DNA from: Azolla caroliniana
Taxonomy: Eukaryota; Plantae; Polypodiophyta
Assembly: GCA_043228905.1 (NCBI GenBank)
Contig: JBHGNT010000009.1
Coordinates: forward strand, 4,960,001 to 5,024,000
Direction: 5' to 3'
DNA length: 64,000 bases
Below the pieces are notes generated by a model. The model saw only the letters and a list, made by a program, of their open reading frames with translations, made no database searches and had not been told where the DNA came from. The translations under genes were made by a program, and so were the position numbers. Shown in pieces: positions 1,378 through 33,966 of the stretch. How positions within the stretch are numbered: the stretch's first letter is position 1; the number at the start of each line of letters is the position of its first letter.

Positions 1378-1637
1378 TGTTAGGAAACAAGTCCCTCCGG
1401 ATGGGAAATGAGAAGAACAGTACTGATGAGCAAACTCGGCCGAGGCCGAAACAGGATTTGGAGTACCCAGCTACGGAAGACTCGGTGAGAACCGGATGAC
1501 AAGTACCCGGCAACGGAAGACCCGGTGAGAATCGGATGTGGTGTACCCGGCAAGCGCCGGATGAGGAGTACGCGGCTACGGAAGACCCGGTGAGAACCGG
1601 ATGAGGAGTACCCGGTGAGAACCGGATGTGGTGTACC
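1378..1637 (+). mobile_element. Truncated copia LTR (5' part) with CCGG-rich tandem repeats
   Basis: Starts TGTTAGGAAACAAGTCCCTCCGGATGGGAA, nearly the same as the LTR starts at 8364 and 14891; repeats of gagtacccggctacggaagacccggtgagaaccggatg. Confidence 0.85.
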
Positions 1638-3018: not shown

Positions 3019-5531
3019 CACTAGAAATGGAAAGAGATTTATATTATAAGAGAGCAAGGATTACAAATAGTAGGCTAAGGGATTACAAATTGGTGTTGAA
3101 CCGAATGAGTTAGAATGAATGAACATACACCTATTTATAGGTCCTTATGGAGTATTCTAGAATGTTCTAGAATTCTCTGAATATCTTGTATTAACTATAA
3201 TATAATTATTATAATTATACATCATGTATCTTATGCTAATGGTTAAAGGTCTAATGGTTTTTGTGAGGAAGAATGGAAAGAGAGTTTATATTATAAGAGA
3301 GCAAGGATTACAAAGAGTAGGATAACGGGCTACAAATTGGTGTTGAACCGAATGAGTTAAAATGAATGAATAGACACTTATTTATAGGTCCTTATGGAGT
3401 ATTCTAGAATGTTCTAGAATATTTTAGATATTTAATATAATCATGGAATATTCTACAATGTTCTAGAATACTCTAAATATATTGTATTAACTATAATATA
3501 ATTATTCTAATTATACATCATGTATCTTATGCTAATGGTTAAAGGTCTAACAGATAGACCAAGACGTCATGGATTCGAATCCTTATAAGGCCAAAACGTA
3601 TGTCTTCATGAAATTATCCCCCCTTTTTGACAACGAGTTCCACGAGTCGAAAGATAAGATTTCGGACTTGGCTTATGGGGATATTTGTTGTGAAACGCGG
3701 AAACCATGTCGGAGGCATTAGCAAGATTCTCGGAAGGCTCCCATGTTCGATCATTAGGTGTATAACCTAACCAATCTACTAAATAATACAGTTTGTTGCG
3801 GACGATCTTGGAGTCGAGAATGGTTGCAACTTCATATTCAAAGCCATTGGAAATTTCGATTGGAGGTGGGGGAGATGTAAGATGACCTGGGCGAGAGCTG
3901 GTTGTGTAGGGTTCCAAAAGGGAAACATGGAAGACCGGGTGAAGACGCATATGAGGTGGTAGATCAAGGCAAAATGCCACATCATTGATCTTACCAGATA
4001 TCACATATGGGCCAAAACGTTGATAATCCAATTTGTAGCAAGGTCAGGTGGTTTTAATGTGACCTTGTAAGAGCCATACTCGATCTCCTACTTGAAACAA
4101 AGGTGATGAATCATGTCAATGTCAGTTGGAAACCGGCTTTTGAGTAGCACATAAATGGTGCGAAAGGATATCCTGAATTTCTTGGAGTCGGCTAAGCCGA
4201 TCTTCAGCAGTTGGGTTTGTCGGGAGCTCAAGATGTTCAAGCATAGTCCAACGTGGATGGTACCCAATGTTCGCAAAATATGGGGAGTATCCAGTAGAAG
4301 AATGTTCTGAGTGTTTGTAAGCAAATTCTGCCAAATGTAATAGATCAACCCAATCATCTTGTTGATAGTTGACAAAACAACGAAGGTATTGCTCTATTGC
4401 CCGTTAGTTTCTGGATGGTAGTCGGAAGAGAGTTTGCAAGAAGTATGTAAGAGTTCGAACATGTGCCGCCAAAATTTTGAGATGAATTGGGGACCCCGAT
4501 CACTGATAATATAATCGGGAAGACCATGATGCCGAAACACCTCTCTCATGAGTAACTCGGCTGTCTCTTGGCTCGTAATGGCCTACGTGCAGGGAAGAAA
4601 ATGCGCCATCTTCGTAAAATGGTTTGCTACCATGAGAATAGAATCAAAACCCTTGGAAGGTGGTAGATCCGTAATGATATCCAATGAAATAGATTCCCAT
4701 GGACTCTCAGGAATAGGCATTGGCTGTAATAAGCCATATGGATGATGTCGAGGTTTTTTGGATCGGCAACATGTATCACAACTACGAACATAATCCGTAA
4801 CAAAATGATGAAGTTGTGACCACCAATATCATCAAGAAATTAATGCCAAAGTCTTGTAGATGCCGAAATGTCCAGCCATTGGTGTGTCATGACATTGTTG
4901 CAAGACTTGGAGTCGAGAAGGACTCTCAGGCACATACAAGAGATTTTGTCGAAAAGTAAATCATCATGCCAACTGAACTGGTTATAGTCTTGACAAGGAT
5001 TTTGAGATTGTGAACAAGAAGCTCAATTTGGGATAATGTGGTTCAAAATGTCTTGGGAGAATTCATCAGTCTCAATATGCTCCCGAATGGAATCAAGAAG
5101 ACTTGAATCTCGGGGTGTATCTATAGCATGGAATGCCATTAGTCGTAGACGGTTAGAACCCAAGAGGATTTGCTTCTGACTTTCAAATGCGACCTCCCCT
5201 AGTTGAAGTTCCATATACGAATGCCGAGATAAAGCATCCGCTTTTCCTTGTTGTATCCCAGGGCGATATAGAATTACAAAATCAAAACGAGTTAAGAACA
5301 AGCTTGTCGACGACTCAAGACTCGAGCACTTTGGAAGTTCATTAGGTTTTTGTGATAATTTAATATAATCATGGAATATTCTAGAATACTCTAAGTATCT
5401 TGTATTAACTATAATATAATTATTATAATTATATATCATGTATCTTATGCTAATGGTTAAAGGTCTAACATATAGATCAAGACGTCATGGATTCGAATCT
5501 TTATAAGGCCAAAATGTATGTCTTCATGATA
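2931..5531 (-). mobile_element. Ty3/gypsy chromovirus (Tcn1-like), internally deleted
   Basis: TSD GATTC at 2926-2930 and 5532-5536. 3' LTR 2931-3612 with PPT next to it; partial 5' LTR ~5355-5531. RNase H end (YRPG..QGKADALSR), integrase, GPY motif and chromodomain (YEVATILDSK..YLVDWLGY..RTWEP) remain. Confidence 0.92.
3606..4031 (-). pseudogene. Integrase C-terminus with chromodomain (chromovirus pol fragment)
   Basis: RFGPYVI..LHPVFHVSLLEPY..YEVATILDSKIVRNKLYYLVDWLGYTPNDRTWEPSENL. Confidence 0.9.
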
Positions 5532-5731
5532 GATTCTGCCCGGTCAGTCAGTCCTTCCACGACATCTCTGTTGATGTCCAAGGAGACCTTCTTGCCAAAT
5601 TTTGGCTGAATCAAGTTGGAGAGTATTGAGTCTTCATTGAAGACTATGTCGTGGCTCTGGATCAATTTCCGGTTCTTTGGGTCCCATAGCTCATAGCCGA
5701 AGTCCCCATCGGTTCCTTAACCGAGAGTGCC

Positions 5732-5880
5732 TGTTGGGAAAAACAGGTCCATCCGGATGAGAAGAGCAATGGTCGAATCAATTGGAATTGATGGGAAGTT
5801 GGCCTAGGCCAAAAACCGAATAATCGACAAATTGAATGATCAATTTAATAGCCGATTCAGGAAACTAATTTTGTAAATAG
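5732..5880 (+). mobile_element. Truncated copia-type LTR fragment
   Basis: TGTTGGGAAAAACAGGTCCATCCGGATGAGAAG resembles the other copia LTR starts; shares ttgtaaatag and aatagccga motifs. Confidence 0.6.
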
Positions 5881-18302: not shown

Positions 18303-20294
18303 TTACTTGAGCATCACTATCAACCAAGGCATCTTTGATGTGAAACCCTTGATGGAAACCGGGATGGTTGGCCATATGTCCTTTAGATCTTCTACTTGCA
18401 CGATCCCCATGTAATGCACGGTCTTCTGACTTTGGTGGATACTTTCAAGCTTTCCCCTCCCCTTTCGTAATGTGGGAGATAATTGGAGAAGTTGTGGCCA
18501 TGTTATCCTTGGTCCACTTGATATCAATTCACGCTTCAGATTGAAAGCTTCTACACTTTCTCCTATAGGAATATCATCCATCTTTATCTTCCTTCTAGAG
18601 TTTCTCCTTCTCAATTTCTCCTCTTTCTCATTCTCCTTCGACTTCTTCTTTTGCCTTGAGGCACTAGATTCTCCTTCTACTTCTTTCTCCCTTTGCGTGA
18701 CTCTTGTCCTTTTCACAGGAACTACTTCACAAGCATTATCACTATCATCAATAAAATTAAGAAGATTCACATTATCACTATGCGTGGGAACTTGAGCCAT
18801 ATGAAGGGCTATGGCTTCACCTCCTTCTACTCCATTATTGATAGGTCATTGCCCATTCATTTGCAATTGATACATGCAACTTCCCATACCACTTTGTTGT
18901 TGATGAGGACATCTTGTTGAGATGTGTCCCCTCGCTTGACAAGAATAAAAAATTACACCTTGATGCTCTCTGAACCCACCGCCATACGGAATAGAGTTGT
19001 GAATTGTTTGGGATTGTCGCAAGTGAGCCATCACTTCATCAAAGCGTTGATTCACCAAGGCCAGTGTACCTTGTTCACTCTTTACTTGCTACATTTCTTG
19101 AGATACACTTGTTGGGTTTATTGTTGTGGTAGTATACACATTTGGAAACACTTGTCCACCATGCACAATTGAAGATGAGGCCTGAACGTTGGCACAAGGC
19201 ATCAAGTTTGCACCCAAAGCCGTCATTTGGGGGTCCCCCATGGAACTCATCATCTTCACTTGTCGATCATAAGATTGACAACTTGAATAAGAGCTTGAAA
19301 AGATGTAGGATCCTTCAAGTTTGCCTCCAAACGGAAATACATGTCAATACCCATCTTGAATCGTTCCATCTTAAACCACTCCTCTTCAATGCCATCACGA
19401 AGAAGAATCCACGGCGTCCACAAATCCTTGAAATTTCTTTCATACTCAATGAAACCAAGAGGTGATTCCATCTTTAGTTGAAAAAGTTCTTCTCTTACTT
19501 CGGTTTCATTGTAGCTACCAACAAGGGAAACTTTTCATTGTCAGTGATGCGTCCATAGAAATGGCATGATGCTCAAAGGATGCCAACAATGCACCAGCAT
19601 CTTGTATTCTTTCACCCGAAAACGTGAACTGCATTCCTAGGTTAATGTAATACACTAACACCAAGAAAGAATAGGACCTCCCTCCTATACGAAAAGTATC
19701 AACCCTCATTGGAGCGCCAAAATGATAAGGTGTATGACACAAATGATAGTTGTACACAATATGAGGGCTTGACCAAACCGATTAGAGAGAGTTGTGAATT
19801 ATAATAGATTATAGATTCCAAGATGGCTAAAAATTAGGGAGAGACACTCAATAAATTAAGAGAAAAGATAGAGAAGACGAGAAAGAGATAAGAATGCTAT
19901 AATATTCTACTATTGAGACAATACAAATGGGATAAAATCCAAATTCAACCAAAGAACCAAAGAACTTCTAAGCTTCCAATCACTCAAATCCACAAATTTC
20001 TTTCCTTATTCTACCTTCATCCCTTTCCTCCTTCAACTATCCTTCTTTATTCTCACTCCTAAGATTCTACCCCTTCTAAGACTCCCTCATCTCACTTTTT
20101 ATAATCTTCTTCTTCCCATCTTTTCCAACTATCTCTCATCCCCGTTTCTATCGAGTCTCTTCTTACTTCTTGTCTCTTCCCTCCCCCACTTCCTCTCTTT
20201 TTCACGCTCTTTACAAAAAAAAATCACCTCCTATTTTTAGCTATGACACAGTGACCTTCTCAGCCTTATATCCCTATCATCCGAGCTCCAAATT
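18303..20294 (-). mobile_element. Non-chromovirus Ty3/gypsy remnant: gag fragments, PBS-like site and part of 5' LTR
   Basis: ITWPQLLQLSP motif and degenerate zinc knuckle FYSCQARGHISTRCP. PBS-like TGGCGCTCCAATGAGGG (19703-19719) lies 3 nt from an LTR end at 19723. The LTR appears to continue at ~33520-33966. Confidence 0.65.
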
Positions 20295-20500
20295 ATATGT
20301 TTTAGACCGTGAGTTCGGTACAAGGAGTGCGGGCGGTATACAATCGGTGGGTGTATGTGAGAGGGAGAGTGAGAGTTAAACAATACAAATGTGAGTGAGA
20401 TATATATATATATATATATATACAAAGTTGAGAGAGAGAGAGAGAGAGATACACTAAAAAACTAATTCATATTAAGAAACTTAATAGCTAATACAAACAA

Positions 20501-20558
20501 ATGGTCGATGTGGCAGACTAGTTTCGCTCCTACGGAGCTCATTAGTGCACATGACCAT
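20501..20558 (-). ncRNA. Type I hammerhead ribozyme motif A (core G5A variant)
   Basis: Minus strand: ATGGTC-ATGTG-CA CTAATGA GCTCC-GTA-GGAGC GAAA CTAG TC TG-c-CACAT-c-GACCAT. Stems I and II pair; stem III is the minimal palindromic form. Confidence 0.8.
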
Positions 20559-20595
20559 GTAGAATTTGAGGGGTCTATATAGGGAAGATATGGGA

Positions 20596-20630
<35 letters not shown>

Positions 20631-20662
20631 GACCAAATGGTCGGAACAAGGAGTGCGTAAAG

Positions 20663-23600
20663 TGTCGAGAAGCGTGACTGGCCACAACCGACTTCTCATT
20701 CAGATGTTCGGGTGCAGGGAATGTAAAGTAGAATGCACTCAAACAGAGTACGAAAATAGAAAGGGCACAAGAGACAGAAACACACAATTTTAGGTGGAAA
20801 CCCGAAATGGGAAAAAACCACAGGGGTCCACAAACCTTGAGAAACAGAATCACTATGCTAAAGGGAGGAGTACAACTAGAAGCTCCGAGGCAACGACCTC
20901 GAGATTCTACTTCGTCAACAGACGGCTACAGAGTTACACACGCCCTCACTCTCACTCACTTATTGTTACACAGTTACAGAGGCAACGACCTTCTAAGTAA
21001 CTTTTTAACAATAACTCATCATCACATTATGATTTCCCTAAGTACTTATACTAGTACACCTTTTGGGTTATTTACAAGTGTACCCCATAAGGGCATATTT
21101 AGACTATTTACAAGTATAGTCTTCCGAATTGGCTGTCTACACGATTTTGATTTCGGTTTCGGCCTCGACCTCGGCCTATCGGCTCTTCTCTTCCCACCCA
21201 GAGGGACCCATTTCCTAACAAATCCACCTTCATTCTGGCATGGGGTACTGCACCAATCCGATCTTCCGTCAGCACGCGCTCAGCTTTTCGGCTAGTAACA
21301 CTTTAGTCAACATATCTAATCCATTTTCGGCCGTGTGGACCTTCACTAGAGAGAATTCCCTTTCTTCTACCCTCTCCCGGAGCCAATGATACCTTCGTTG
21401 GATGTACTTTGTCCTCGAGTGGTAGACGGCATTTTTCACAAGGTGGGTGGCACTCTAATTATCGCAATAGAGTCGGAATTCTTCTTTTCAAATTCCCAGC
21501 TCACTGATAAAATCCTTCATCCATATGATTTCCTTGCCGGCTTCCGTTGTGGCCATGTACTCGGCATCCGTGGTCAACAACGCCATGGCCTTCTGCAACC
21601 TCAATTACCACGAGACAGCTCCCCCTGCATATGTCATTACGTATCTGAACGTGGATCGGCTGGTATTTGCATCAGCCGACATGTCTGAATCCGTGTAACC
21701 TTCCAATGTGGGGTTACCTGAGCCAAAATGAAGACACAAGCTCGAGGTGCCTCTTAGGTACCGAAATATCCATTTCACGGCACCCCAATGCTCTTTCCCG
21801 GGATTGCGCATATATTGGTTGACCACTCCGACGGCGTATCCAATGTCCGGCCTGGTACACACCATTGCATACATCAGGCTTCCAACCGCTGAGGCATAGG
21901 GGACTTTTGACATCTCGGCCTTTTCGGTTTTCGATTTCGGACATTGATCTTTACTCAACTTGCAGTTCGTCGGCAATGTCGAGCCAACCGGTTTTGCGCC
22001 TTCATACCGAATCTCTAGAGCACCTTTGTCACATATTTCTCCTCTGACAGCCATAGCAATTTCTTTGTTTTGTCTCGAACAATGTGCATGTACCCAGGAT
22101 TTGCTTTGCCAGACCCATATCCTTCATCGAGAATGACCCGTTCAAGGCCTTCTTCAGTGCTTGGATCTCCATATGGTCCCGTCCGACAATTAGCATGTTG
22201 TCCACATACAACAAAAGGATGAGGAAATCTCCTCCATCGAACTTCTTCACAAATACGCAGTGATCGGCCTGCGTTTTGTGGTACCCGTTTTCGGTCATGA
22301 AGGATTCAAATTTTCGGTACCATTGTCGTGGAGCCTTCTTCAACCCGTACAGGCTCTTCCTCAATTGGCATACCAGGTTTTCTTTACCTTTCATTACGAA
22401 TCCTTCCGGTTGCTACATATATATCTCCTCTTCGAGATCTCCGTGCAGAAACGTCGTCTTAACATCCAATTGTTCGACTTCGAGATCCATGCTCGCCGCA
22501 ATGCTCAACACGGTTCGGATGGATGTCATCTTCACTACTGGGGCAAATATTTCATCCAAATCCACGCCCTTCTTCTGTTGAAACCCTTTTACGACAATTA
22601 TTGCTTTGTATCTGGGTGGCTTTCGGCCATCTCCCGGTTTCAACTTGTATACCCACTTATTTCGGAGTGCCTTCTTCCCCTTCGGCAACTCGGTCAGTTC
22701 GTATGTGTGGTTCTCATGCAAGGAATCCATCTCCTCTTGCATGGCACATAACCACTCGCGGCAGTGGGTATCTTTCTTGGCTTCTTCGTAGCTTTCCAGC
22801 TCCCCCTCATCAATTAGCAGTACACGTTCTTCATCCGGAAATCTTCGGGGGGCTCTTCGCTCTCTAAGGGGGTATCTTCGGCCTGTGTTCGGTATAGTTA
22901 GTTCATCTTCAACCTCTTCGGCCGAGTCAATTTCGGTTCCTCGTTTGGCCGATTCCCCTTGATCATCAGATGTTTCTCGATTTTGCCGAGTATTAGATCG
23001 ATCGACTGGTACGGTTTGATTTTGATCAAACCATCATCTACACGATCCAGTCGAGCATCGACTCGGCTCGATTCGGTGGTTGGAGACTTTTTCTCGTTCT
23101 CCCAATAAATCATTGTATTCTCTTCCATGAAGACAATGTCTCAGCTCCTAATCACCTTCTTCTTGGCTAAATCCCATAGTCGATAGCCGAACTCATCATC
23201 GCCGTAACTAAGAAATATGCACGACCGAGATTTCGGGTCTAATTTCCCCCTCTAGTCCTTTGCCACATGCACAAAGGCAAGACAACCGAACACCCTCAAA
23301 TGTCGGTATGACACGTCTTTGCCACTCCACACCCGTTGTGGAATATCACCGTCCAAGGGTACTGAGGGTGATCGGTTTATCACATATGTTGTTATCATTA
23401 GCGCCTCAACCCAGAACATTTTCGGTAATTTCACATGTGCAAGCATGCTTCGGACTCTCTCCATTATGGTCTGATTCATTCTCTCGGCCAGCCCATTCAA
23501 CTCTGGCGTTTTTGGCACGGTATACTCAAGCCGGATTCCTTCTTTTCGGCAATATTCTTCAAACGGTCCACGATACTCTCCGCCATTGTCCGCTCGGACT

Positions 23601-26145
23601 GCCTTCAACTTACGACCAGTTTCTCTCTCAGCCCTCGTTTGGAACTCTTTGCAGACGGATAACACTTGATCCTTCATCTTCAACACGGAAGCCCACAACT
23701 TCCGGCTATAGTCGTCTATAAAGGTCACAAAATATTGTGAACCACTGTGCGACTTCGTGTCCATGTAGCATAATTCCGTTTGCACAAGTTCCAACGGCAT
23801 TTTCTTCCTCATTGAGGGCCTTGTTCGGAAGGATGTTCGATATTTCTTACCATCCAAGCAATCCGTGCATTTCTCAAGTTGGACGTTCTTCACCTCCGGA
23901 ATGAGGTTATCCTCGGCAAGCTTCTGCATCCCCTTTTGGCTCATGTGGCACAAACTCCTATGCCACAGTTCACCGATTGTTTTAGCTGCCACATTCACTT
24001 CCCCACGGCATAATCGAGCATTCATTACGTACAATGTGCTGGTTTTCCATGCTCGAGCCACGATTAGGCTCCCCTTGTAGAACTTCATGACAGAATTCCA
24101 GATGCTACCCATGTAGCCTTCATCATCCAGCCGACCGGTTGATATCAAGTTCAATCGAACCTCTGGAACGTGTCGAACATCTCTCAGCACGAGTCTGTAG
24201 CCAGTTGAGGTCACCAAACACATGTCTCCAATGCCCACGATTCGGCATGCTCCTTCATTTCCCATCTTTACGGATCCGAGATAATCAGCCTTGTACGATG
24301 AGAAGCATTTCCGGTCAAGGGTTAGGTGAAACAACGCACCCGAATCAACCACCCATGTCGATTCATCACCGACAAGGTTCACTTCGTTCTACTCGCTAAT
24401 GAGCAGCAACTCCTCCTCACTTGTCGCCGAGGTGTTCCTGCTTTCCGAAATCTTTTTCGGTTGCACACCATCGGCTCCCCCTTTTTCCTTTCAGAAATGT
24501 CGGCAATTCTTTTGAAAGTGCCCCGGCTTCCCGCAATAGAAGCACGTGGACCTTCCTCTCGACTTCAACCTTGTCCCCGACTTGTCTCAATTCTGGGGAC
24601 TTCGATTTCGGCTCCTTCCATATCACCTTGTGTGATGAGAGCCTTCTTGTCGGTATTGGACTCTCAGTCCTTCCGGCGAGCTTCTTCGTTCAACAAGCTC
24701 GACTTCACCTACTCTAGGGATAGATGTTTCCCTTCCGGTCTTGCATTGCCCAAAGTAACAACCAGTGTTTCCCAACTGTCCGGAAGGGATCCAAGCTAGA
24801 ATAGTGCAAACACCTCATTGGCAAGAGGTACTTTAGGGAGGTGGTTTGGTTCATTAGTCCTCGGAAGGCATTGATGTGCTCCGCCATGCTGGAGCCATCC
24901 TGATACCGAAGTCTCACGATTTTTCTGAAAACTAAGACTTTATTCACGACGTTCTTGTTTTCAAACATAACCTCGATCTTCTTCCACATGACATTTGCTT
25001 TTGTTTCTTCGCCAAAGTTGTTGTATAGACTCATGTCTATAAAACATCTTATGTATGCGGTAGCTTTTAAGTGCAACGCTTCCCAAACCGTTGCATCAAT
25101 CTTGTTTGGCCTTGTATCTCTGAACTGCACTAGCAGCTAGAGATCTTTGCACACGAGCATGTCTCTCATCTTCGACTTCCACACTGAATAGTTGGAGCCG
25201 GTTAACTTAAACATGCCGCCGAACGAGTCTTCCATCGCTCTAATACCACTTTGTCGAGAATCGTGACCATGCACAATTGGCTTCTCGTTCGGATGTTTGG
25301 GTGCACAGAACGTAAAGTAGAATGCACTCAGACAGAGTACGAAAACAAAAAGGGCACAAGAGACAGAAACACACGATTTTAGGTGGAAACCCAAAATGGG
25401 AAAAAACCACGAGGGTCCACAAACCCCGAGAAACAGAATCACTATGCTAAAAGGAGGAGTACTTCGTCAACAGACGGCTATAGAGTTACACACACTCTCA
25501 CTCTCACTCTCACTCACTTACTATTACACAGTTACAGAGGCAACGACCTTCTAAGTAACATTTTAACAATAACTCATCATCACATTATGATTGCCCAAGT
25601 ACTCATCCACAAACCCCGAGAAACAGAATCACTATGCTAAAAGGAGGAGTACTTCGTCAACAGACGGCTACAGAGTTACACACACTCTCACTCTCACTCT
25701 CACTCACTTACTGTTACACAGTTACAGAGGCAACGACCTTCTAAGTAACATTTTAACAATAACTCATCATCACATTATGATTGCCCAAGTACTCATCCAC
25801 AAACCCCGAGAAACAGAATCACTATGCTAAAAGGAGGAGTACTTCGTCAACAGACGGCTACAGAGTTACACACACTCTCACTCTCACTCTCACTCACTTA
25901 CTGTTACACAGTTACAGAGGCAACGACCTTCTAAGTAACATTTTAACAATAACTCATCATCACATTATGATTGCCCAAGTACTTATACTAGCACACCTTT
26001 TGGGTTATTTACAAGTGTACCCCATAAGGGCATATTTAGACTATTTACAAGTATAGTCTTCCGAGTTGGTTGTCTACACGATTTCGGTTTTGGCCTCGGC
26101 CTATCAGCTCTCCTCTTCCCATTCGGAGGGACCCGTTTCCTAACA
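20663..26145 (-). mobile_element. Ty1/copia LTR retrotransposon, full length, decayed
   Basis: 3' LTR 20663-21220; 5' LTR 25252-26145; TSD TAAAG/TAAGG (4 of 5); PBS-like TGGTATTAGAGC. gag 24400-25235, PR-INT ORF 23252-24382, RT/RH 21230-22750. Confidence 0.95.
25416..25985. repeat. Three tandem copies of a 190-bp unit inside the 5' LTR
   Basis: Period 190 (ORFs at 25591 and 25781 have identical starts); the 3' LTR has one copy. Confidence 0.95.
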
Positions 26146-26212
26146 TAAGGATAGGCACACGACGGTTAGAGGGTGGTTAAGCTAAATAAGAGAAAGTAGG
26201 CAACATACACTA

Positions 26213-26264
<52 letters not shown>

Positions 26265-26284
26265 AATGTTTTTATTAAAAGAGG

Positions 26285-26347
26285 GTGGTGGTCTTACGCA
26301 AACTAGTTTCGCTCCATAGTGGAGCTCTTCAATGCAAAGACCATTAC
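26285..26347 (-). ncRNA. Type I hammerhead ribozyme motif B (core C3U variant)
   Basis: Minus strand: GTAATGGTCTT-TGCA TTGAAGA GCTCCA-CTA-TGGAGC GAAA CTAG TT TGCG-t-AAGACCACCAC. Confidence 0.78.
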
Positions 26348-26456
26348 AACAAGAGAATGTGATTAATAAAGGGGTGGGGAGGAAGAGGGAGTGAGAGAAA
26401 AGGGGTGGGGAGGATTTAATTTGTCTTGTGGATGACATAGAATGGGAGGTAGTGAT

Positions 26457-29400
26457 GATAGATAGATAGATAGATAGATTATATTATCGTCTTCGGAGGT
26501 CAGATATGACCTATGAGACCAAAAATATTACATTTCACGTGATACATGTGAAGGTGAGTAGTGACTCTCAATGTTCAAGAACTTTACCAATGAATGTTGC
26601 AATTGAGAGTGCACATCGTGGTTGTGAGAGAAATTCATGCAAGGATTGGGCTCAATCGAAGAGATGTGGAAAGCATGGTCGAATATGATCAAAGGCAAAG
26701 CATTGTATCAAAGTGTGATACTCAGACTCTCGAACTTGTTTAGGGCAAAGTGTGCATAGTCGGCCATTCTCATCATTTGTGCCCCAACGCACCATCCAAC
26801 ATCTCAATGTGTGCGAGCTAAGTCACATGGAAGCAATGGTTCGAATGGCAGATATCGGGATGGGCTCTAACATGTATCAATGTGTACAGCTTCCCCGTTC
26901 CGCGAAGAATATGGTTTTGTAGTTAGGTGCAACATTTGTACTATAATGTGTGAAGCGTGAGCCACCACATTTGTCCCATGTCATGATACATTGGCATTGC
27001 AAAAAGGCCTCATTTACAAAGGAATCTAGTGACGCATCATGAAGCAAGTATCTTGCATCCTATCTACCAAACCATTTGTCTAAATCTTGCATCCAACCGG
27101 AACACAAAATTTTGCTTTTATGCGTCTTTTGGATCTTTTTGCTTGCTTCCCATGCAATTCTAGGAAGTTGATGTGAGGGGCTTTTTTGAACCTTAAGCAT
27201 GTATTCAACAACCCTTTCCATGGCCATGATCTCAATGGGAAGCGATTCCGTCTCAAGGAGGAGGAGGGTGTAGGGCGTTTGTTTCTTAACTTGTAGAAAC
27301 TTTGTAAGAAAATGTTTTTGGACATTTTCAAACTCTTTCCACATAGATTTAGGGATGCTACCACCCCATACTTCCACCCCATAGAGAAGAACCGGGGTCA
27401 CCAAAGTGTCAAAAGGATATTTCTTGAGGACCCAACACTTAATATCTCCAAGCTTGCATTGCATGTGTTCTCAAATGCATAATATGCTCGCTTACCCGCC
27501 TCTAAGCGGCGTGTAGCACATTCATTCCATTTATGATTTGAAGGAACTTCAGGCCAAGATATTTGAAGCTTTCCACACATTCAAGTGGCTCATTGTTGTA
27601 CATAATGCATGGTTTATCTATTTTTTGACTCTTCACAAGCATAATCTTTGTTTTAGAGCTATTGACACTTAATCTAGTATGCATGCAAAAAATTTCCAAT
27701 GCCTTCATAAACTTTTGTGCATCTCCTGAAGTATTTGCAAAAAGCACTACATCATCCGCATATAACAAAAGCATAATCACAACATTCCCAATGGCAACTT
27801 CTTCAACACATTCTTCCTTTACAAACTTGGTAACCATTTATTCTAATTCATCAATGCATAGACCAAATAATGTTGGTGAGAGTGGGCATCCTTGCTTAAC
27901 ACCAATAGTGCTATTGAAAAAATCTGAAAGTCTATCTCTCATACGCACACAACATATAACCTTCTCATATATTTGGGAAATTGCAAGCATATATTCACTT
28001 GGCACCTCAAGTTCTTCCATCCGCCTCCAAAGATGCTCACGAGGTACCATATCAAAAGCTTTCTTGAAGTCTACAAAGCAACAATATAAACCTTTACCTC
28101 TAAGGCGACTTTCCTCCATTAATACTCGAAGAGTGACAAGATGATCAATGGTGCTATGGTGTTTTCGAAAACCAGCTTGTCCATAAGCTCGCTTACCATT
28201 TTTTTCTACCCATACACTTATCTTTGTTTCCATTATATATCCAAATAGTTTTGCCATTAATGAGCCAACCATGATGGTTCGATAGTTGTTTACATTATTT
28301 ACATCTCCGCCTTTATGTAAAGGTTTGATCCAATTTGTAGTCCAATCATATGGCATACCATGTTGCAATACATCATTAAACATATCGCATATCCATATAT
28401 GTGATTCCTTTCCCGTCCATTTGAGCATTTCAGTTTTTATACATTGAAGATCGCTTGCCTTTCGAGAGGCCAATTTCTTAAGTCCTATGCATATATCTTC
28501 AATTGTAAAGAAGGGAGACATATGTGAAAGAGAAACATAACAGATCATCTTTCTGGCAAGAGATCACTCGTATAAATTCTTACAATGCATAGACAAGTCA
28601 TGAAGAGTTAAGTCACCATAACTCTCAACATGTTTCCCCTTTAGATTTCCCCAAAATTTAGCACATGCGTGTGCTTTCTCTTACGTTTGGAGAAGTTGTT
28701 GAGTAATTTCCCATATTCGTCTCTTTCTTTAAATAAGCCTTTTATAGTCATGCAAATGCTTTTGGTAATTTTCTTTATCCTTAACTACATCCAAAACCAT
28801 AAGGCACTTTCGAGCTTCATGACATTCTTTATCAAACCATTTTTTCTTACATTTCTTGGTGCATTTCCATGATGTGCGGTTGGTCGAAAAACATTTGTTT
28901 GTACAAGAGAGAATGACATTCTTAAAAGATTCTCATTTGCATTCTAGTGTGGCACCATGTTGTGTCTTTGTCATTTGTAACATATCCTCAACCATCTTGG
29001 AATACATGGGCACTCGCTTAAGATTCATGCTCAAGTGTGTTTGTTTACTATCTTCAATGACCTTCTCGCAATCAAACCTATGCATACATTTGAGATCATA
29101 TACATAAATTCCTATGATCGGATTCCGGTGTCCATTCCCCCGGTGAGAATTTATGTATACGATCCAAAATACCTTCGGAAAGTAGCACATAGTCAATCAC
29201 ACGATTTCCATTGTGTTTTCTACATGTAAAGCCGTTAGTATTTGGCCATAAGGAAACACCATTTGCAATAAGCAATCCGGTACTATTGCACATTTGTAGG
29301 AGTAGTTTCCCAAATTGGTTCGAATCTTTTTCATCGCTAGAAGATCGACTATACATTTGCATATCCTCTTGCATCCTTGAGATATGTGGCATGAAAGATT

Positions 29401-30920
29401 CTTGTGAATCAAGTTGGAAACTTCTTGTACGAGCATTCATGTCACCAAAGACAATAACTTCCACATTGGATTTGAAATAATCAATATCATCTTCTAGATT
29501 TGCAAAATGTTGATCTTTATCCAAACAAGCATAGAAGTTAGAATCTTGATGAGGAATGTAACATCCAACAACAAAAGTGGGCAAATCATTAAGTGTTTCT
29601 ATTTTGAGCCATATGTAGCATTTATGTTCATCATTTTTTACGATTGACACATATTTCTCTATTTCCTTCTTAATCAAACATGCCACCCCTCCTTGTCCTC
29701 TTCTTTGTCTTAGATTTTTCTCCCATATCAAAGAGTGTACATTATAGTTTCCTAAACCTTGAATCCTTTGGGTATCATGCTCCCATGTTTCAACAAGAAG
29801 TATGATATCTGAGTCATCGATGAACTCCTCTATGCCGAATCCCACATTCCATGGGTATCCATTGCAATTACAAAAACATAGTCGTAAAGACATGGTTTAG
29901 TCTCATAGGTCACGTGTCCCTATTTGGCTACATTTCCATCTTTAAGCACATCCTTAACCTTATTTTTGAATCTTTCTTCATACGCTTTACGACGGGCATT
30001 TTGTTGTGAGATAGTACGATCTTCACTCACAAAGTATTGCATACCTTTGAGGTATACCCAACTATTTTCGAGTATGATCCGCTGCTTTGTATCATCCGTC
30101 ATTGTGCATACAATGGGCCTTTATCCGGAGTGAGTAACACCATGTTTCCCAACTCTGACATCCCATATACATTCACATCCGACATCCCATAATGCATGCT
30201 AAAAAATTCACCAATGGCCTTTCCAAGGGAAGCGGGTGTTTCCATACTCTCCTCTTTAATCCGACTGATAACAATGTTCTTTGATCTTCGTTCACGCTCT
30301 TTCAATTCTCGAGCATCTATGCTTTATATATTCTTCTCTTGATGCATCACATGCATATTAGATGAGTTTGATACCCATCCCCACCACATACATCGACCCA
30401 TGATTTCGTTGTACATACATTTTTCATCTCACTTACATCCTGCCTCATCGTGTCTAATTTTTCTTCTTTTAATGCTTCCTTTAACTCAATCTTATTAAGG
30501 CACGCATTTGTTTCGAAAGAAGCTCTTTTACATTCTTGAATCTCTTCTTCAAGTTTTGCAACCACTTTCTTAAGAATTTAATTCTCAATGGTAATAGTTT
30601 GGAGCTTAGCATTCTCTTTCATTAACATCCTAATCTCTTCACCTTGCTTGTTTATGGTTTCTTGAAGGGAAATCAAGTGACTCATAAGCATTTTGTCCAT
30701 TGTGTTTATTGCATTGGAATCAACATTTGTTGGTGATTTCAGCTCCTTATCAATCATACTCCCGAACTTTGAGGCGGCCTTACGAGTGTGTGTCATTGTA
30801 GGACCAAACCTTATGAGAAGAGAGAGAGGGATAGAGGGACAGAGAAAATGTACCTTTCACTTTATTTAGGGCTTCAAAATCTACCTTGCGTTTAAGGGGC
30901 CGTGGGGCAAAGACGGATGC
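26457..30920 (-). mobile_element. Near full-length non-LTR retrotransposon (LINE, RTE-X-like), ORF1 and ORF2 disrupted
   Basis: ORF1 fragments 30796-29900 (coiled coil, ERERRSKNIVISRIKE). APE endonuclease 29893-29096 (LLVETW, GDMNART, IDY, SDH). RT QAGFR, FVDFKKAFD, GVKQGCPLSP, LLYADD. C-terminal C/H motif near 26700-26790. 3' tail (TATC)n at 26457-26479. Clade assignment is inferred. Confidence 0.9.
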
Positions 30921-31031
30921 GGACAAAAATGCTCATAACTTTTTGCCACGATAACGGAATTCAGTAAATGAACATTCCTTAGAAAGCTCTCTGAAAGAGC
31001 TTTCCAATGAGCTATAGAATGCAAACAATGA

Positions 31032-31097
<66 letters not shown>

Positions 31098-31220
31098 AAT
31101 GTGTGTATGAAAGTCATAGGGAGTGAGAGAGGTAGAATGAGTGTAATGATGATGATGATGATGGGTGTAAGGGGGGGGGGGGGGGGGGGGGGAGTTCTTA
31201 ATGTGATGAAAAAAAGGGGT

Positions 31221-31405
31221 TTTAGGATGGTGGTATAATATTAAGTGGGGGATGTGGGTGGATTTTTTGAAAACTTAGTCTTAAGTGGGGGATTTGGGTG
31301 GATTGTTTGAAATTTTAGTCTTAAGTGAGGGATTTGGGTGGATTGTTTGAAAACTTAGTCTTAAGTGGGGGATTTGGGTGGATATTTTGAAAACTTAGTC
31401 TTAAC
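31221..31405. repeat. 40-bp tandem repeat (~4.5 copies) spanning the PLE stop codon
   Basis: Unit ttaagtgggggatttgggtggattgtttgaaaacttagtc; the minus strand reads KTKFSKYPPKSPT*. Confidence 0.92.
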
Positions 31406-32820
31406 TAGGAGGACATGTATGGACTTAGATTTTGTCCAACATATGAAGGGGCGTGAGATGCCAACAAGCTCGGGATCTAGCACTAAGTCATTATAGAGAT
31501 TTTTTAGAAAACTATGAATGCCTAATTTTGGGGTATTTTTGGTGTACGTAAGTTTAAAGATTGTGGGGTTAAGGGAGGTAGTAGTTTTGGGTTGATATAG
31601 GAGTGTTTCTCTAAGATTAAAGGGTATTTTCCTATAGCTTTTTAGTATGAAGGGGGGTAACCACAGTTAACTAGTCTATTGAAAAAGAGCTTTTTCCTTT
31701 GGTAGAAACCTAATGGGGTGCTTTCTCTAATGAGATATCTCCTCGCTTTATTAATGATAAAGTGTTGTTTTGTATGGCGAGGAAAAAGTGTTGTTTTGAG
31801 GATGATCGGATGAAAAAGGCAAGTATTGGTATAAATTGAGAGGTTTTTGAAAACAATTAAATGAAAAAAACGTCTAAAAAATGTAGCCTAGAGGGGGAAG
31901 TTTGAATAGTAATTTTGATGGAGTTATTGTGTGTAAAGGGTAAAAGTGAAGATATTCTAAAAGTTGAGATTTGGTTCCTATCCAGACCCCAAATGCATCA
32001 TCAATATAGTGGGTGAAGTAGAGGAGATGGGGGGGCGATGGTTGTAAGTTTTCGAGATATACTAAAAAGAGGCAGGCATATACAACTGAGACGTTGTTGC
32101 CCATAGTCGTACCTTTTAATTGTTGGTAGACTACGTTGTCGAAAGTGAGATAGTGATATTCTAAAACAAGGGCACTAAGGGTATAGATGAGATTAGTTTT
32201 TGAAGGGGAAAAATGGGGGTTGATTAGACTATGTAAGGTGGGGAAGATTCGGGTTACGTAGGTGAGAGACATTGTGTTCTTCATAATACATGTGTGGGAT
32301 TGGGAAGAGAGGGGGCATGTATCCATGTCGGCTGCCTTGTGTAGGCCCGTGCATCATGCCATGGAGGGGGGGTTTTAGATCTATAGGCTGGCTGTCATAC
32401 ACAGTCTCGAGCCTTACATCGGAGGGGGAGAATGGGTATGTATGATGGTTTCCGTTTCCAGAGATGTGGCCATTACCAGGTCGAAGATGGAGTGGTGGCC
32501 CGGCCTTTAATTGTGGATGATGTTGGTCGTGGCGGAGTTCGTTGTTTCTTACATCAGAGGGGGAGAACAAGTGTGTCTGATGGTTTCCATTTCTAGAGAT
32601 GTGGTCGTTACCAAGTCGAAGATGGAGTGGCGGCCCAACCTGTAATTGTGGATGATGTTGGTTGTGGCGGAGTTTATTGTTAGTGGGTGGCTAGTTCCTG
32701 TCGACTGTCGGTGGCGGGCATGATATGTATGGTGCTTAAATATGTGAATCTAACACATTGTGGATGGTGTCTGGTGTTGATTGTTACTAGGACCAAATGG
32801 TCGGAACAAGGAGTGTGTAA
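31361..32820 (-). mobile_element. Penelope-like retroelement (PLE) reverse transcriptase, decayed and internally deleted
   Basis: LTFDNVVYQQLKGTTMGNNVSVVYACLFL..YFTHYIDDAFGVW, then across frameshifts FLDV, FQKPLNLYQYLPFSSDHP, FFNRLVNCGYP and PFICWTKSKSIHVLLVKTK. These match PLE RT palm and thumb motifs. Confidence 0.85.
32415..32680. repeat. ~120-bp tandem repeat (~2.2 copies) in the Pro/His-rich N-terminal part of the PLE ORF
   Basis: gagatgtggccattaccaggtcgaagatggagtgg at ~32461 recurs at ~32596 (period ~120-135 bp). Confidence 0.75.
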
Positions 32821-32953
32821 GAATAGGGTTTAGGATTTTACACCACATCATATTAAACCCCACTACCCTTTCTTTTTTCAAGTGCACTTAGCACAGCCCC
32901 ACTCCCCAATTCAAATCCCCTCAAAACCCCCTATATAAACCACCTCACACCCA

Positions 32954-33018
32954 CATGGTCATTTGGCAGTAATGAGCCCTTAGGGGCGAAACTAGTTTGC
33001 CCATAGCATTTGACCATG
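32954..33018 (+). ncRNA. Type I hammerhead ribozyme motif C (degenerate core), inverted relative to the PLE ORF
   Basis: CATGGTCA-ttt-GGCA GTAATGA GCCCT-TA-GGGGC GAAA CTAG TT TGCC...TGACCATG. The upstream ccctatata..acatggtca context matches motif A. Confidence 0.68.
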
Positions 33019-33059
33019 CCCCCACCCCCCATCCCATGTAATTTTCCATTTCTAATGAT

Positions 33060-33435
33060 AATTACACTTCTTAATCTCTCTCTCTCTCTCTCTCTCTCTT
33101 TTAATTTTTAATTAGTAATTAGTATGTAATATCCTCCTTAATCTCTCTCTTTCTCTCTCTCTCTTTTAATTTTTAATTAATAATTAGTATGTAATCTCCT
33201 CCTTAATCTCTCTCTTAATTTTTAATTAGTAATTAGTATATAATCTCCTCCTTAATCTCTCTCTCTCTCTCTTAATTTTTAATTAATAGTTAGTATGTAA
33301 TCTCCTTAATCTCTCTCCCATTCTTTTAATTTTTAATTAGTAAGTAGTATATAATCTCTCTTTCTCTCTCACTCTCTCTCTCTCTCTCTCTTTTAATTTT
33401 AATTAGTAATTAGTATGTAATCTCCTCCCCTCTCT
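33060..33435. repeat. AT-rich minisatellite (~50-65-bp unit, ~7 copies) with embedded (CT)n
   Basis: Unit aatctcctccttaatc(tc)n ttttaatttttaattagtaattagtatgt. Confidence 0.9.
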
Positions 33436-33520
33436 CATAATAGGCGAGGATGTTTATTGTTTTAATCATGTGTTTGTTTGTTTGTTTGTTTGTTTTAAAT
33501 CTTGTTTTTAATTAACCCCC

Positions 33521-33966
33521 ATCTTATCCCTCATCCTATCTTTTCCAACTATCTCTCATCCCCCTTTCTATCAAGTCTCTTCTCACTTCTTGTCTATCTT
33601 CCCTCCCCCACTTCCTCTCTTTTTCATGCTCTTTATACAAGTTTTTCACCTCCTATTTTTTGCTATGACACAATGACCTTCTCATCCTTATATCTCTCTC
33701 ATCCAAGTTCCAAATTTAGCGATATTTGAACCCATATTTGAGCATGATATTTGGACTTCAAACGAAGGAGTTATGACCATTCTTTTCGAACTAATTGTAG
33801 GTGGTCCGCTTTTTCGTTTTTTACTTTTCTCTATGTCTCTTACTTTTACTTTGACTTCTCCTTAAGATCTTGGTTTGTGTTCTTCCCCTCCAAATGTGAA
33901 TGCTCCATACTTTATATTCTTCTAGTGTTCAATAGCTGGAATTCTAAAAATACTTTCACACTTACA
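33521..33966 (-). mobile_element. Remainder of the gypsy LTR begun at 19723
   Basis: 33521-33716 is a diverged direct copy of ~20104-20294. The segment ends CTTACA (TG on minus) immediately before copia sequence starts. Confidence 0.55.

Follow-up and report, generated by a model that had tools for sequence, protein, structure and literature searches.

We followed up a preliminary description of a 64,000-nucleotide stretch of the Azolla caroliniana genome (GenBank assembly GCA_043228905.1, contig JBHGNT010000009.1, positions 4,960,001 to 5,024,000), in which three hammerhead ribozyme motifs (A, B, and C) had been noticed in what was read as a Penelope-like element (PLE) with later insertions. 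This whole 64-kb stretch is referred to below as the window, and positions are counted from its first nucleotide. We conclude, with a probability of roughly 85%, that positions 20297–33528 represent an old and inactive accumulation of fragments of one superfamily, the endonuclease-less PLEs of land plants. Read along the minus strand, the composite begins with an inverted C-type fragment, continues with a 40-nt tail and a truncated and internally deleted B-type copy together with its terminal block, and closes with an A-type fragment that is joined through an (AC)n run. Judged by homology to relatives on other contigs, B is the own 3′ hammerhead of an endonuclease-less PLE with two open reading frames (ORFs), and A and C belong to ORF-less relatives. 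A long interspersed nuclear element (LINE), and then a Ty1/copia long terminal repeat (LTR) retrotransposon, probably landed inside the PLE array afterwards. The PLE-derived pieces are the following.

20297–20624, minus strand: A type, a 5′-truncated 3′ fragment of an ORF-less PLE-derived family, with (AC)n, a TATA-like box (20575–20582), hammerhead A, (CT)n/(TA)n, and the terminal block (20300–20335)
20625–20662, minus strand: B type, the 3′-terminal block of an autonomous-type PLE copy, with the copia element inserted just inside it
26146–26478, minus strand: 3′ hammerhead module of the B-type PLE, with (CT)n, a TATA-like stretch, hammerhead B, and (CT)n(CA)n at 26214–26265
31074–32784, minus strand: body of the B-type PLE, 5′-truncated in ORF1 and with a 1.67-kb internal deletion at 32238/32251
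32781–32820, minus strand: tail, 40 nt that repeat the 3′-terminal block of the element, directly upstream of the truncated body
32821–33528, plus strand: C type, a 3′ fragment, inverted, from an ORF-less variant, with a TATA box (32932–32939), hammerhead C, and 57–65-nt (CT)n-containing tandem repeats (33022–33440)

These assignments come from comparison with relatives, cited here by L numbers, that were obtained in two sets. The first comprised six contigs fetched by protein alone, and the second 49 further loci from a pattern scan of metagenome contigs, in which the pattern demanded the box CTGATGA. The intact design runs from a terminal block/(CT)n and 5′ leader through ORF1 (757–806 aa), ORF2 (~620 aa, a PLE reverse transcriptase (RT) without a GIY-YIG domain), a ~220-nt 3′ untranslated region (UTR), a TATA-like box, a type-I hammerhead, and (CT)n to the terminal block/5′ leader again. 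ORF1 (e.g., L006 195–2465 and L027 82–2499) has no Pfam domain and is conserved between subfamilies at 35–85% identity. Partial tandems among the relatives (L006 31–179 repeats 4742–4890; L004 75–487 corresponds to the ORF2 end and hammerhead of L001) indicate that the hammerhead module serves as the pseudo-LTR. Pseudo-LTRs are present in L004, L006, and L013, and the hammerhead lies within them. Tails of 30–40 bp, inverted 5′-truncated upstream copies, and pseudo-LTRs are described signatures of PLEs (PMC8557442, PMC11167929), and each of them is found in the window or its relatives.

The B-type body contains an ORF1 fragment (32232–32405), the C-terminal half of ORF2 (31379–32239) with frameshifts, and the 3′UTR. 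At 85–88% nucleotide identity, it matches L014 (2056–2558 and 4231–5357) as well as L027, while the B module matches L027 4658–4999 and L014 5344–5580 at 83–91%. Window and L014 positions correspond as follows.

32784–32584: L014 2056–2258, inside ORF1, hence the 5′ truncation
32519–32251: L014 2284–2558, colinear
32251/32238: a gap, with L014 2558–4231 (1.67 kb) missing
32238–31189: L014 4231–5270, colinear
31158–31074: L014 5273–5357, colinear
26478–26258: L014 5344–5580, beyond the LINE, hammerhead B included

The body also carries tandem repeats of its own. Those of 40 nt at 31236–31435 (ORF2 end and 3′UTR) are present in more copies in the window than in L014 or L027, and in the ORF1 remnant a 135-bp stretch is duplicated in tandem (within 32413–32681), at the place of 99-nt repeats in both relatives.

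The RT motifs GTTMG, YIDD, LHFLDV, SSDHP, and CGYP are scattered over shifted frames in the ORF2 remnant. Since the RT ORF of the window (31874–32326, minus strand) gave no Pfam match at an expectation value (E) <0.01, homology had to be taken from phmmer, which, when queried with the remnant against 1.8 billion representatives, returned 944 matches, the best at 70% identity. The best homologues are proteins of 620–641 aa with DUF8422, RVT_1, and HTH_animal domains and no GIY-YIG, and the distant ones include animal PLEs bearing GIY-YIG (PF01541). Named relatives, all uncharacterised proteins, come from Cryptomeria japonica (40% identity), Ginkgo (40%), Selaginella moellendorffii (39%), and Closterium (34%). 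By tblastn, the window matched residues 550–607 of ORF1 and 329–617 of ORF2 of L006; the remnant at 31379–32239 is 57% identical to the latter, which identifies it, by homology, as a PLE-type RT. It extends to residue 617 of 620, with nothing past that point. Intact ORF2 proteins of the relatives end after the thumb and lack PF01541, unlike the endonuclease-bearing PLEs (Penelope/Poseidon, Neptune, Nematis, and Dryad). By these matches, the lineage is that of the streptophyte endonuclease-less PLEs. The preliminary description had spoken of PLE hammerheads with a PLE ORF between them, and the RT homology and the design of the relatives bear this out.

The A and C pieces have other closest relatives. 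The A fragment (20289–20624) aligned over ~320 nt with L013, L029, L034, L040, L046, L047, and L050 at 81–85% identity, and C (32929–33106) aligned with the second, variant hammerhead module of L047 (1737–1912, including downstream sequence) at 78% over 188 nt. The A-type (L013) family has a partial-tandem unit of ~1.8 kb (L013 1429–1631 repeats as 3222–3425), and its contigs have neither a PLE ORF nor any other ORF longer than 106 aa. Its resemblance to the autonomous elements (best with L015, L032, and L048) is limited to the promoter plus hammerhead, at 80% over 110 nt, and to the block plus 5′ leader, at 68% over 178 nt, as would be expected if the family were a non-autonomous derivative. 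A and B are alignable only over ~48 nt of the hammerhead core, and MAFFT, applied to all three units, misaligned B, which belongs to a different subfamily. The predicted cleavage sites of A and B would lie 297 nt apart without the copia element (5785 minus 5488), as had been calculated before. However, given how little A and B share, this interval joins two unlike 3′ modules via (AC)n, and the ~300-nt retrozyme-like tandem unit that had been proposed on the strength of the interval has to be abandoned. Tandem copies of one short hammerhead-bearing unit, which would mark a tandem of the non-LTR retrozyme kind, are absent from the window and present in L014, where 5335–5558 repeats as 5608–5815 (88% identity, period 273 nt, (CT)n-flanked); the second unit has the same stem II as B and the box CTTAAGA.

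The strongest alternative is the arrangement originally proposed, in which a single PLE inserted once and brought with it an inverted pseudo-LTR (C), an ORF, and two tandem ~300-nt pseudo-LTRs (B and A). In their textbook form (PMC8557442), PLEs consist of an inverted copy, a body, and repeats downstream of it, and the inverted upstream copy and head-to-tail downstream order seen earlier are indeed typical of PLEs. In addition, all three pieces lie between the two copies of a 188-bp direct repeat, as would fit one integration, perhaps with template switching between co-expressed RNAs, and true 273-nt tandem hammerhead modules do occur in L014. Nevertheless, we consider a single element with its own tandem pseudo-LTRs unlikely: beyond the ~48-nt core, A and B do not align, and the three pieces match different subfamilies, namely the L013 family without ORFs for A (over 320 nt), L014 and L027 for B, and a third variant for C, so that they are paralogues and not copies of one pseudo-LTR.

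The 188-bp repeat itself consists of two features.

20109–20296, unstranded: X, left copy of the 188-bp direct repeat, adjoining the left end of the composite; 88% identical to 33529–33716; flank or possible long target duplication
33529–33716, unstranded: X′, the right-hand copy, which by contig depth is moderately repetitive in the genome

The two copies bracket the composite exactly, with homology beginning and ending at its borders, and there is a 7-nt microhomology (AATTTGG) to the A-type 3′ end at the left junction. By contig depth, both the repeat and the right flank are repetitive, and the repeat had no match in any fetched contig. Its geometry looks like that of a long target duplication; alternatively, X and X′ may be two copies of a dispersed repeat.

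The B-type PLE is interrupted by two younger elements.

20663–26145, minus strand: nested Ty1/copia LTR retrotransposon, with the Pfam domains Retrotran_gag_2, Pol_BBD, gag_pre-integrs, rve, and RVT_2, an LTR pair, and an empty site in L027
26479–31073, minus strand: nested LINE (a non-LTR retrotransposon), with the Pfam domains Exo_endo_phos (apurinic/apyrimidinic endonuclease) and RVT_1 (Pfam extent about 26.5–30.9 kb), inside (CT)n of the PLE 3′UTR and with a (TCTA)n 3′ tail

Both had been described as later insertions, which the Pfam domains and the uninterrupted relatives confirm. L014 and L027 are contiguous across the LINE site, where the target duplication is unreadable because the insertion lies in the (CT)n run of the 3′UTR. 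L027 is also uninterrupted through the copia site, where it reads ...cgtgtgcatatccgtacgcactccttgttccacccatttgg, then unrelated flank; its end is ...ACGCACTCCTTGTTCC.CCCATTTGG, then unrelated flank. The read-through and the end of L027 confirm the copia borders and the 5-bp target duplication, which is imperfect (TAAAG vs. TAAGG), and identify a conserved block as the 3′ terminus of the element. The copia LTRs (20663–21220 and 25252–26145) are only 89–92% identical, so that even this nested insertion is old. They also differ in length; the upstream LTR (894 bp) contains three 190-bp tandem copies (25416–25985, 98–99% identical) and the other LTR (558 bp) one (20858–21047).

Three copies of the conserved block, CACTCCTTGTWCCGAMC, lie in the window, always on the minus strand (20313–20329, 20639–20655, and 32799–32815), against a chance expectation of 0.06. 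Its copies stand at the end of the A fragment (20300–20335), at the end of the B-type copy (20625–20662), and in the 40-nt tail (32781–32820). In L015, L032, and L048, this block is found between the hammerhead and the beginning of ORF1, and the tail in the window is 90% identical to it. A block preceding the PLE ORF had been noted at 32801; the block is present, at 32799–32815, but the ORF does not start there, as the copy is 5′-truncated and deleted and the block is its 40-nt tail.

The hammerheads were located with a family covariance model (R1) built from 16 distinct hammerheads in the relatives' contigs, with window sequence excluded. With 128 kb searched, R1 gave exactly three matches.

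20493–20561, minus strand: hammerhead A, type I, helix III ACUAGU, box CTAATGA (G5 to A), predicted cleavage between 20516 and 20515; 58.8 bits, E 1e-14
26278–26348, minus strand: hammerhead B, box TTGAAGA (C3 to T), predicted cleavage between 26301 and 26300; 62.3 bits, E 1e-15
32952–33021, plus strand: hammerhead C, box GTAATGA (C3 to G, G5 to A); 37.4 bits, E 3e-8

All three of the motifs in the preliminary description were thereby recovered, at its coordinates and on its strands. The string GCGAAACTAGT occurs three times in the whole window, at 20517–20527 (minus), 26302–26312 (minus), and 32986–32996 (plus). In folding of motifs A, B, and C, stem I closed around the stem II hairpin, with z-scores of −3.0, −3.0, and −2.2 against shuffled controls. 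When the arm pairing was spelled out for A, B, C, and 17 relatives, helix I comprised 10–13 bp and helix II 4–6 bp; in the three window motifs, helix III is the palindrome ACUAGU (2 bp and a 2-nt loop), followed by U or C. The arrangement is that of type I, in which loops close helices II and III and helix I is left open. All three motifs retain GAAA and H17, but none has an intact CUGANGA box. Co-folding of dimers yielded nothing beyond trivial swapped duplexes, and we base no conclusion on it. Taken together, the model scores and pairing identify the three motifs as real but mutated hammerhead ribozymes.

Stock Rfam models were silent in the window at gathering score. In E-value mode, their sole match was Hammerhead_HH9 on A (17.5 bits, E = 4.4), and even the intact relatives score 25.8–32.5 bits with HH9, under its gathering threshold of 52. 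The check with type-I models that had been suggested would consequently have appeared negative with stock models, whereas the family-specific model gave its three matches. Elsewhere in the window, at 1403–1487 (plus), a CTGATGA is followed 17 nt later by CGAAAC; there is no convincing helix II and no Rfam or family-model match, and this is probably chance.

Intact versions exist among the relatives. A CTGATGA hammerhead is present on five of the six protein-fetched contigs, a sample unbiased for the box; on the sixth, L002, no hammerhead was found. Near-identical copies with CTGATGA exist for A (L013, L029, L034, L040, L046, L047, and L050) and for B (L014 and L027); because the pattern scan required this box, it demonstrates that intact copies exist and does not give their frequency. 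At position 32969 in motif C, 80–100% of the contig depth in four sequencing runs has C instead of G, in a table without a row for 32971 (G5). The helices covary between subfamilies: stem I changes from GGUC/GACC to GACC/GGUC (AUGGUC...GACCAU to AUGACC...GGUCAU) and helix III from ACUAGU to ACAUGU, both palindromes. Similarly, in the Cryptomeria relative L057, the hammerhead (4109–4177) lies 400 nt past the RT ORF, with helix II changed from GCUC/GAGC to GGGG/CCCC and helix I reading CCAA/UUGG. Such covarying stems, across subfamilies and in Cryptomeria, indicate that the family hammerhead is a conserved structured RNA. L057 has two further peculiarities, a 5S-rRNA-like stretch in its 3′UTR (3767–3865; 32.9 bits against a gathering score of 38) and a second ORF copy 2.4 kb downstream. 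In the Selaginella relative, a search with the family model out to 4 kb from the gene gave no hammerhead; the published Selaginella hammerhead may be more divergent or farther from the gene.

The state of the window copies fits neutral decay at ~10% divergence, in which the helices were kept and C3 and/or G5 were lost. In a comparison of natural copies only, substitutions specific to the window at sites where all relatives agree amount to 12% for unit A, 10.5% for unit B, and 8.8% for the body. At ~10% divergence, a 7-nt box is mutated about half the time, and three altered boxes therefore need no special explanation. There is no sparing of the hammerhead core relative to its surroundings, and transitions are common, though not overwhelming, among the substitutions. 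The changes of CTG to TTG and to CTA are CHG-type transitions and as such are compatible with methylation-driven decay, which we do not claim. The locus is an inactive fossil with intact relatives elsewhere, just as had been anticipated from its altered boxes.

A working retrozyme-like source of ~300-nt circular RNA is accordingly very improbable at this locus. Two same-strand hammerheads, a palindromic helix III, and cleavage sites that are 297 nt apart once copia is removed are what such a source would show, but essential bases are gone (G5 in A and C3 in B), 5.5 kb of copia now separates A and B, divergence has proceeded at the neutral rate with the core not spared, and none of the listed runs holding the stretch is on record as RNA. 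The idea that the motifs are chance occurrences or Helitron 3′ ends (CTAG hairpin ends), which the GC-rich hairpin followed by CTAG and the lack of an Rfam match at gathering score might suggest, merits almost no credence and is refuted by the family-model E-values (1e-15 to 3e-8, with three matches in 128 kb), by the fixed distance of the motifs downstream of the PLE RT ORF in many contigs and Cryptomeria, and by homology that, instead of ending at CTAG as the preliminary description would have taken to disprove its case, continues for hundreds of bases on both sides of it (20289–20624, 26149–26478, and 32929–33106).

The relatives suggest how active elements might work. Transcripts would begin at the foot of helix I, ~25 nt past the TATA box; in the window, the boxes CTATATAG (20575–20582) and TATATAAA (32932–32939) lie 23–25 nt upstream of helix I and would start transcripts at the ribozyme. 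Two hammerheads would then pair via the palindromic ACUAGU or ACAUGU of helix III, self-cleave, and trim the RNA to unit length, the unstable helix III implying dimer action between neighbouring copies (as in PMC4209133). The RT encoded by ORF2 would copy this RNA from the conserved terminal block, ~200 nt past the hammerhead. A similar internal initiation of reverse transcription is known for an Anolis PLE, in which hammerhead cleavage was dispensable for insertion in vitro (PMC11167929). The ORF-less families retain the terminal block, which would permit their mobilisation in trans.

Telomeric repeats are a variable feature of the family. In a sister subfamily (L009 2–64 and 167–247, L017, L030, and L036), C-strand telomeric (CCCTAAA)n is found downstream of the hammerhead, and in several subfamilies (CCCTAA)n arrays lie inside ORF1; further telomeric repeats are at L014 1839–1856 and L015 5987–6040 and in L020 and L041. 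Reverse-complement telomeric repeats beside a 3′ hammerhead, along with a place at chromosome ends, characterise the telomere-associated endonuclease-less PLEs (Athena/Coprina type). By the hammerheads of the window copies and of the L014, L027, and L013 types, there are no telomeric repeats, and (CT)n and the block are found instead. The window copy has copia, LINE, and gypsy elements around it, and no telomeric array occurs in the window.

Several points weigh against our account of an old pile-up of endonuclease-less PLEs. Its material is assembled contigs, and none of the listed runs with the window stretch is registered as RNA; the start of transcription, the cleavage, and the circularisation are predictions. 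The contigs with intact copies are metagenome-labelled assemblies (ERZ10343xx-44xx), which maybe come from the same plant or a close relative, and all intact A-type examples were found with the CTGATGA-requiring pattern, which does not give their ratio to CTAATGA copies. We infer the order and number of the insertions, including whether A, B, and C came in one event. Lastly, the presence of an endonuclease-less element among copia, LINE, and gypsy copies, instead of at a telomere, is unexplained.

We tentatively raise a broader possibility, which we would not favour at present, that living ORF-less derivatives of endonuclease-less PLEs (the ~1.8-kb L013 type and the 273-nt tandems) are mobilised in trans through the hammerhead module and the 40-nt block and release processed, possibly circular RNAs, and that the composite entered its interstitial site with a 188-bp target duplication. 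If so, these derivatives would be a land-plant counterpart of the animal non-LTR retrozymes, distinct from plant LTR retrozymes, and the duplication would show how an endonuclease-less PLE integrates off telomeres.

Hammerhead-bearing PLEs of plants have so far rested mainly on Selaginella, and the locus and its relatives add a diversified two-ORF endonuclease-less lineage in another land plant. By homology, it comprises at least five autonomous subfamilies with ORF-less partners, and its hammerhead is conserved as far as a conifer. The lineage provides material for asking what PLE hammerheads do, whether processing RNA to unit length or parasitism on the PLE, and the window locus is useful as a dated nested record, with the PLE first and then the LINE and copia. 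De la Peña and Cervera reportedly proposed in 2017 that plant retrozyme-like RNAs can descend from PLEs, and the lineage also offers material to test that descent.

The kind of element is already published; what is new here is its occurrence in another land plant. Endonuclease-deficient PLEs with type-I hammerheads in pseudo-LTRs were described in Selaginella moellendorffii (Cervera & de la Pena 2014, PMC4209133; Coprina-type, Gladyshev & Arkhipova 2007 as cited there), and tandem hammerheads in early land plants have been mentioned (PMC5680766). Like the elements of the window, those of Selaginella live in a plant, encode an RT without GIY-YIG, and carry the hammerhead in repeats down- and upstream of the ORFs, and the L009-type sister subfamily shares with them (CCCTAAA)n after the hammerhead, the classic telomere-attachment feature. 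They differ in that the RTs are only 39% identical at the amino acid level, that the elements described here have two ORFs, and that the window subfamilies have (CT)n and the 40-nt block in place of telomeric repeats, in an interstitial copy.

With metazoan type-I hammerheads (Schistosoma/human HH9-like) and those of PLEs, the family shares the open helix I, the CUGAUGA...GAAA core, and a 2-bp palindromic helix III that implies dimers, and HH9 is its best Rfam model. However, it scores 17–33 bits against a gathering threshold of 52, and its helix I is long (10–13 bp with a bulge). The animal non-LTR retrozymes have been proposed to be non-autonomous PLE derivatives (bioRxiv 10.64898/2026.07.22.740005), and the ORF-less relatives, which keep the hammerhead module and the termini, resemble them, as does the 273-nt tandem of L014. 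In contrast to the animal elements, the host here is a plant, the ORF-less unit measures ~1.8 kb vs. 170–400 nt, and the 297-nt interval in the window does not repeat a single unit. Plant LTR retrozymes (Cervera et al. 2016, PMC4918200) are likewise non-autonomous plant retroelements with hammerheads. We rejected this class for the window locus, where the hammerheads are type I and the flanks are PLE pseudo-LTRs; a primer binding site and polypurine tract were not searched for. In the plant LTR retrozymes, type-III hammerheads lie in true LTRs, accompanied by a primer binding site and polypurine tract and served by Ty3/gypsy machinery, whereas the hammerheads described here are type I and are associated with the termini of a PLE.

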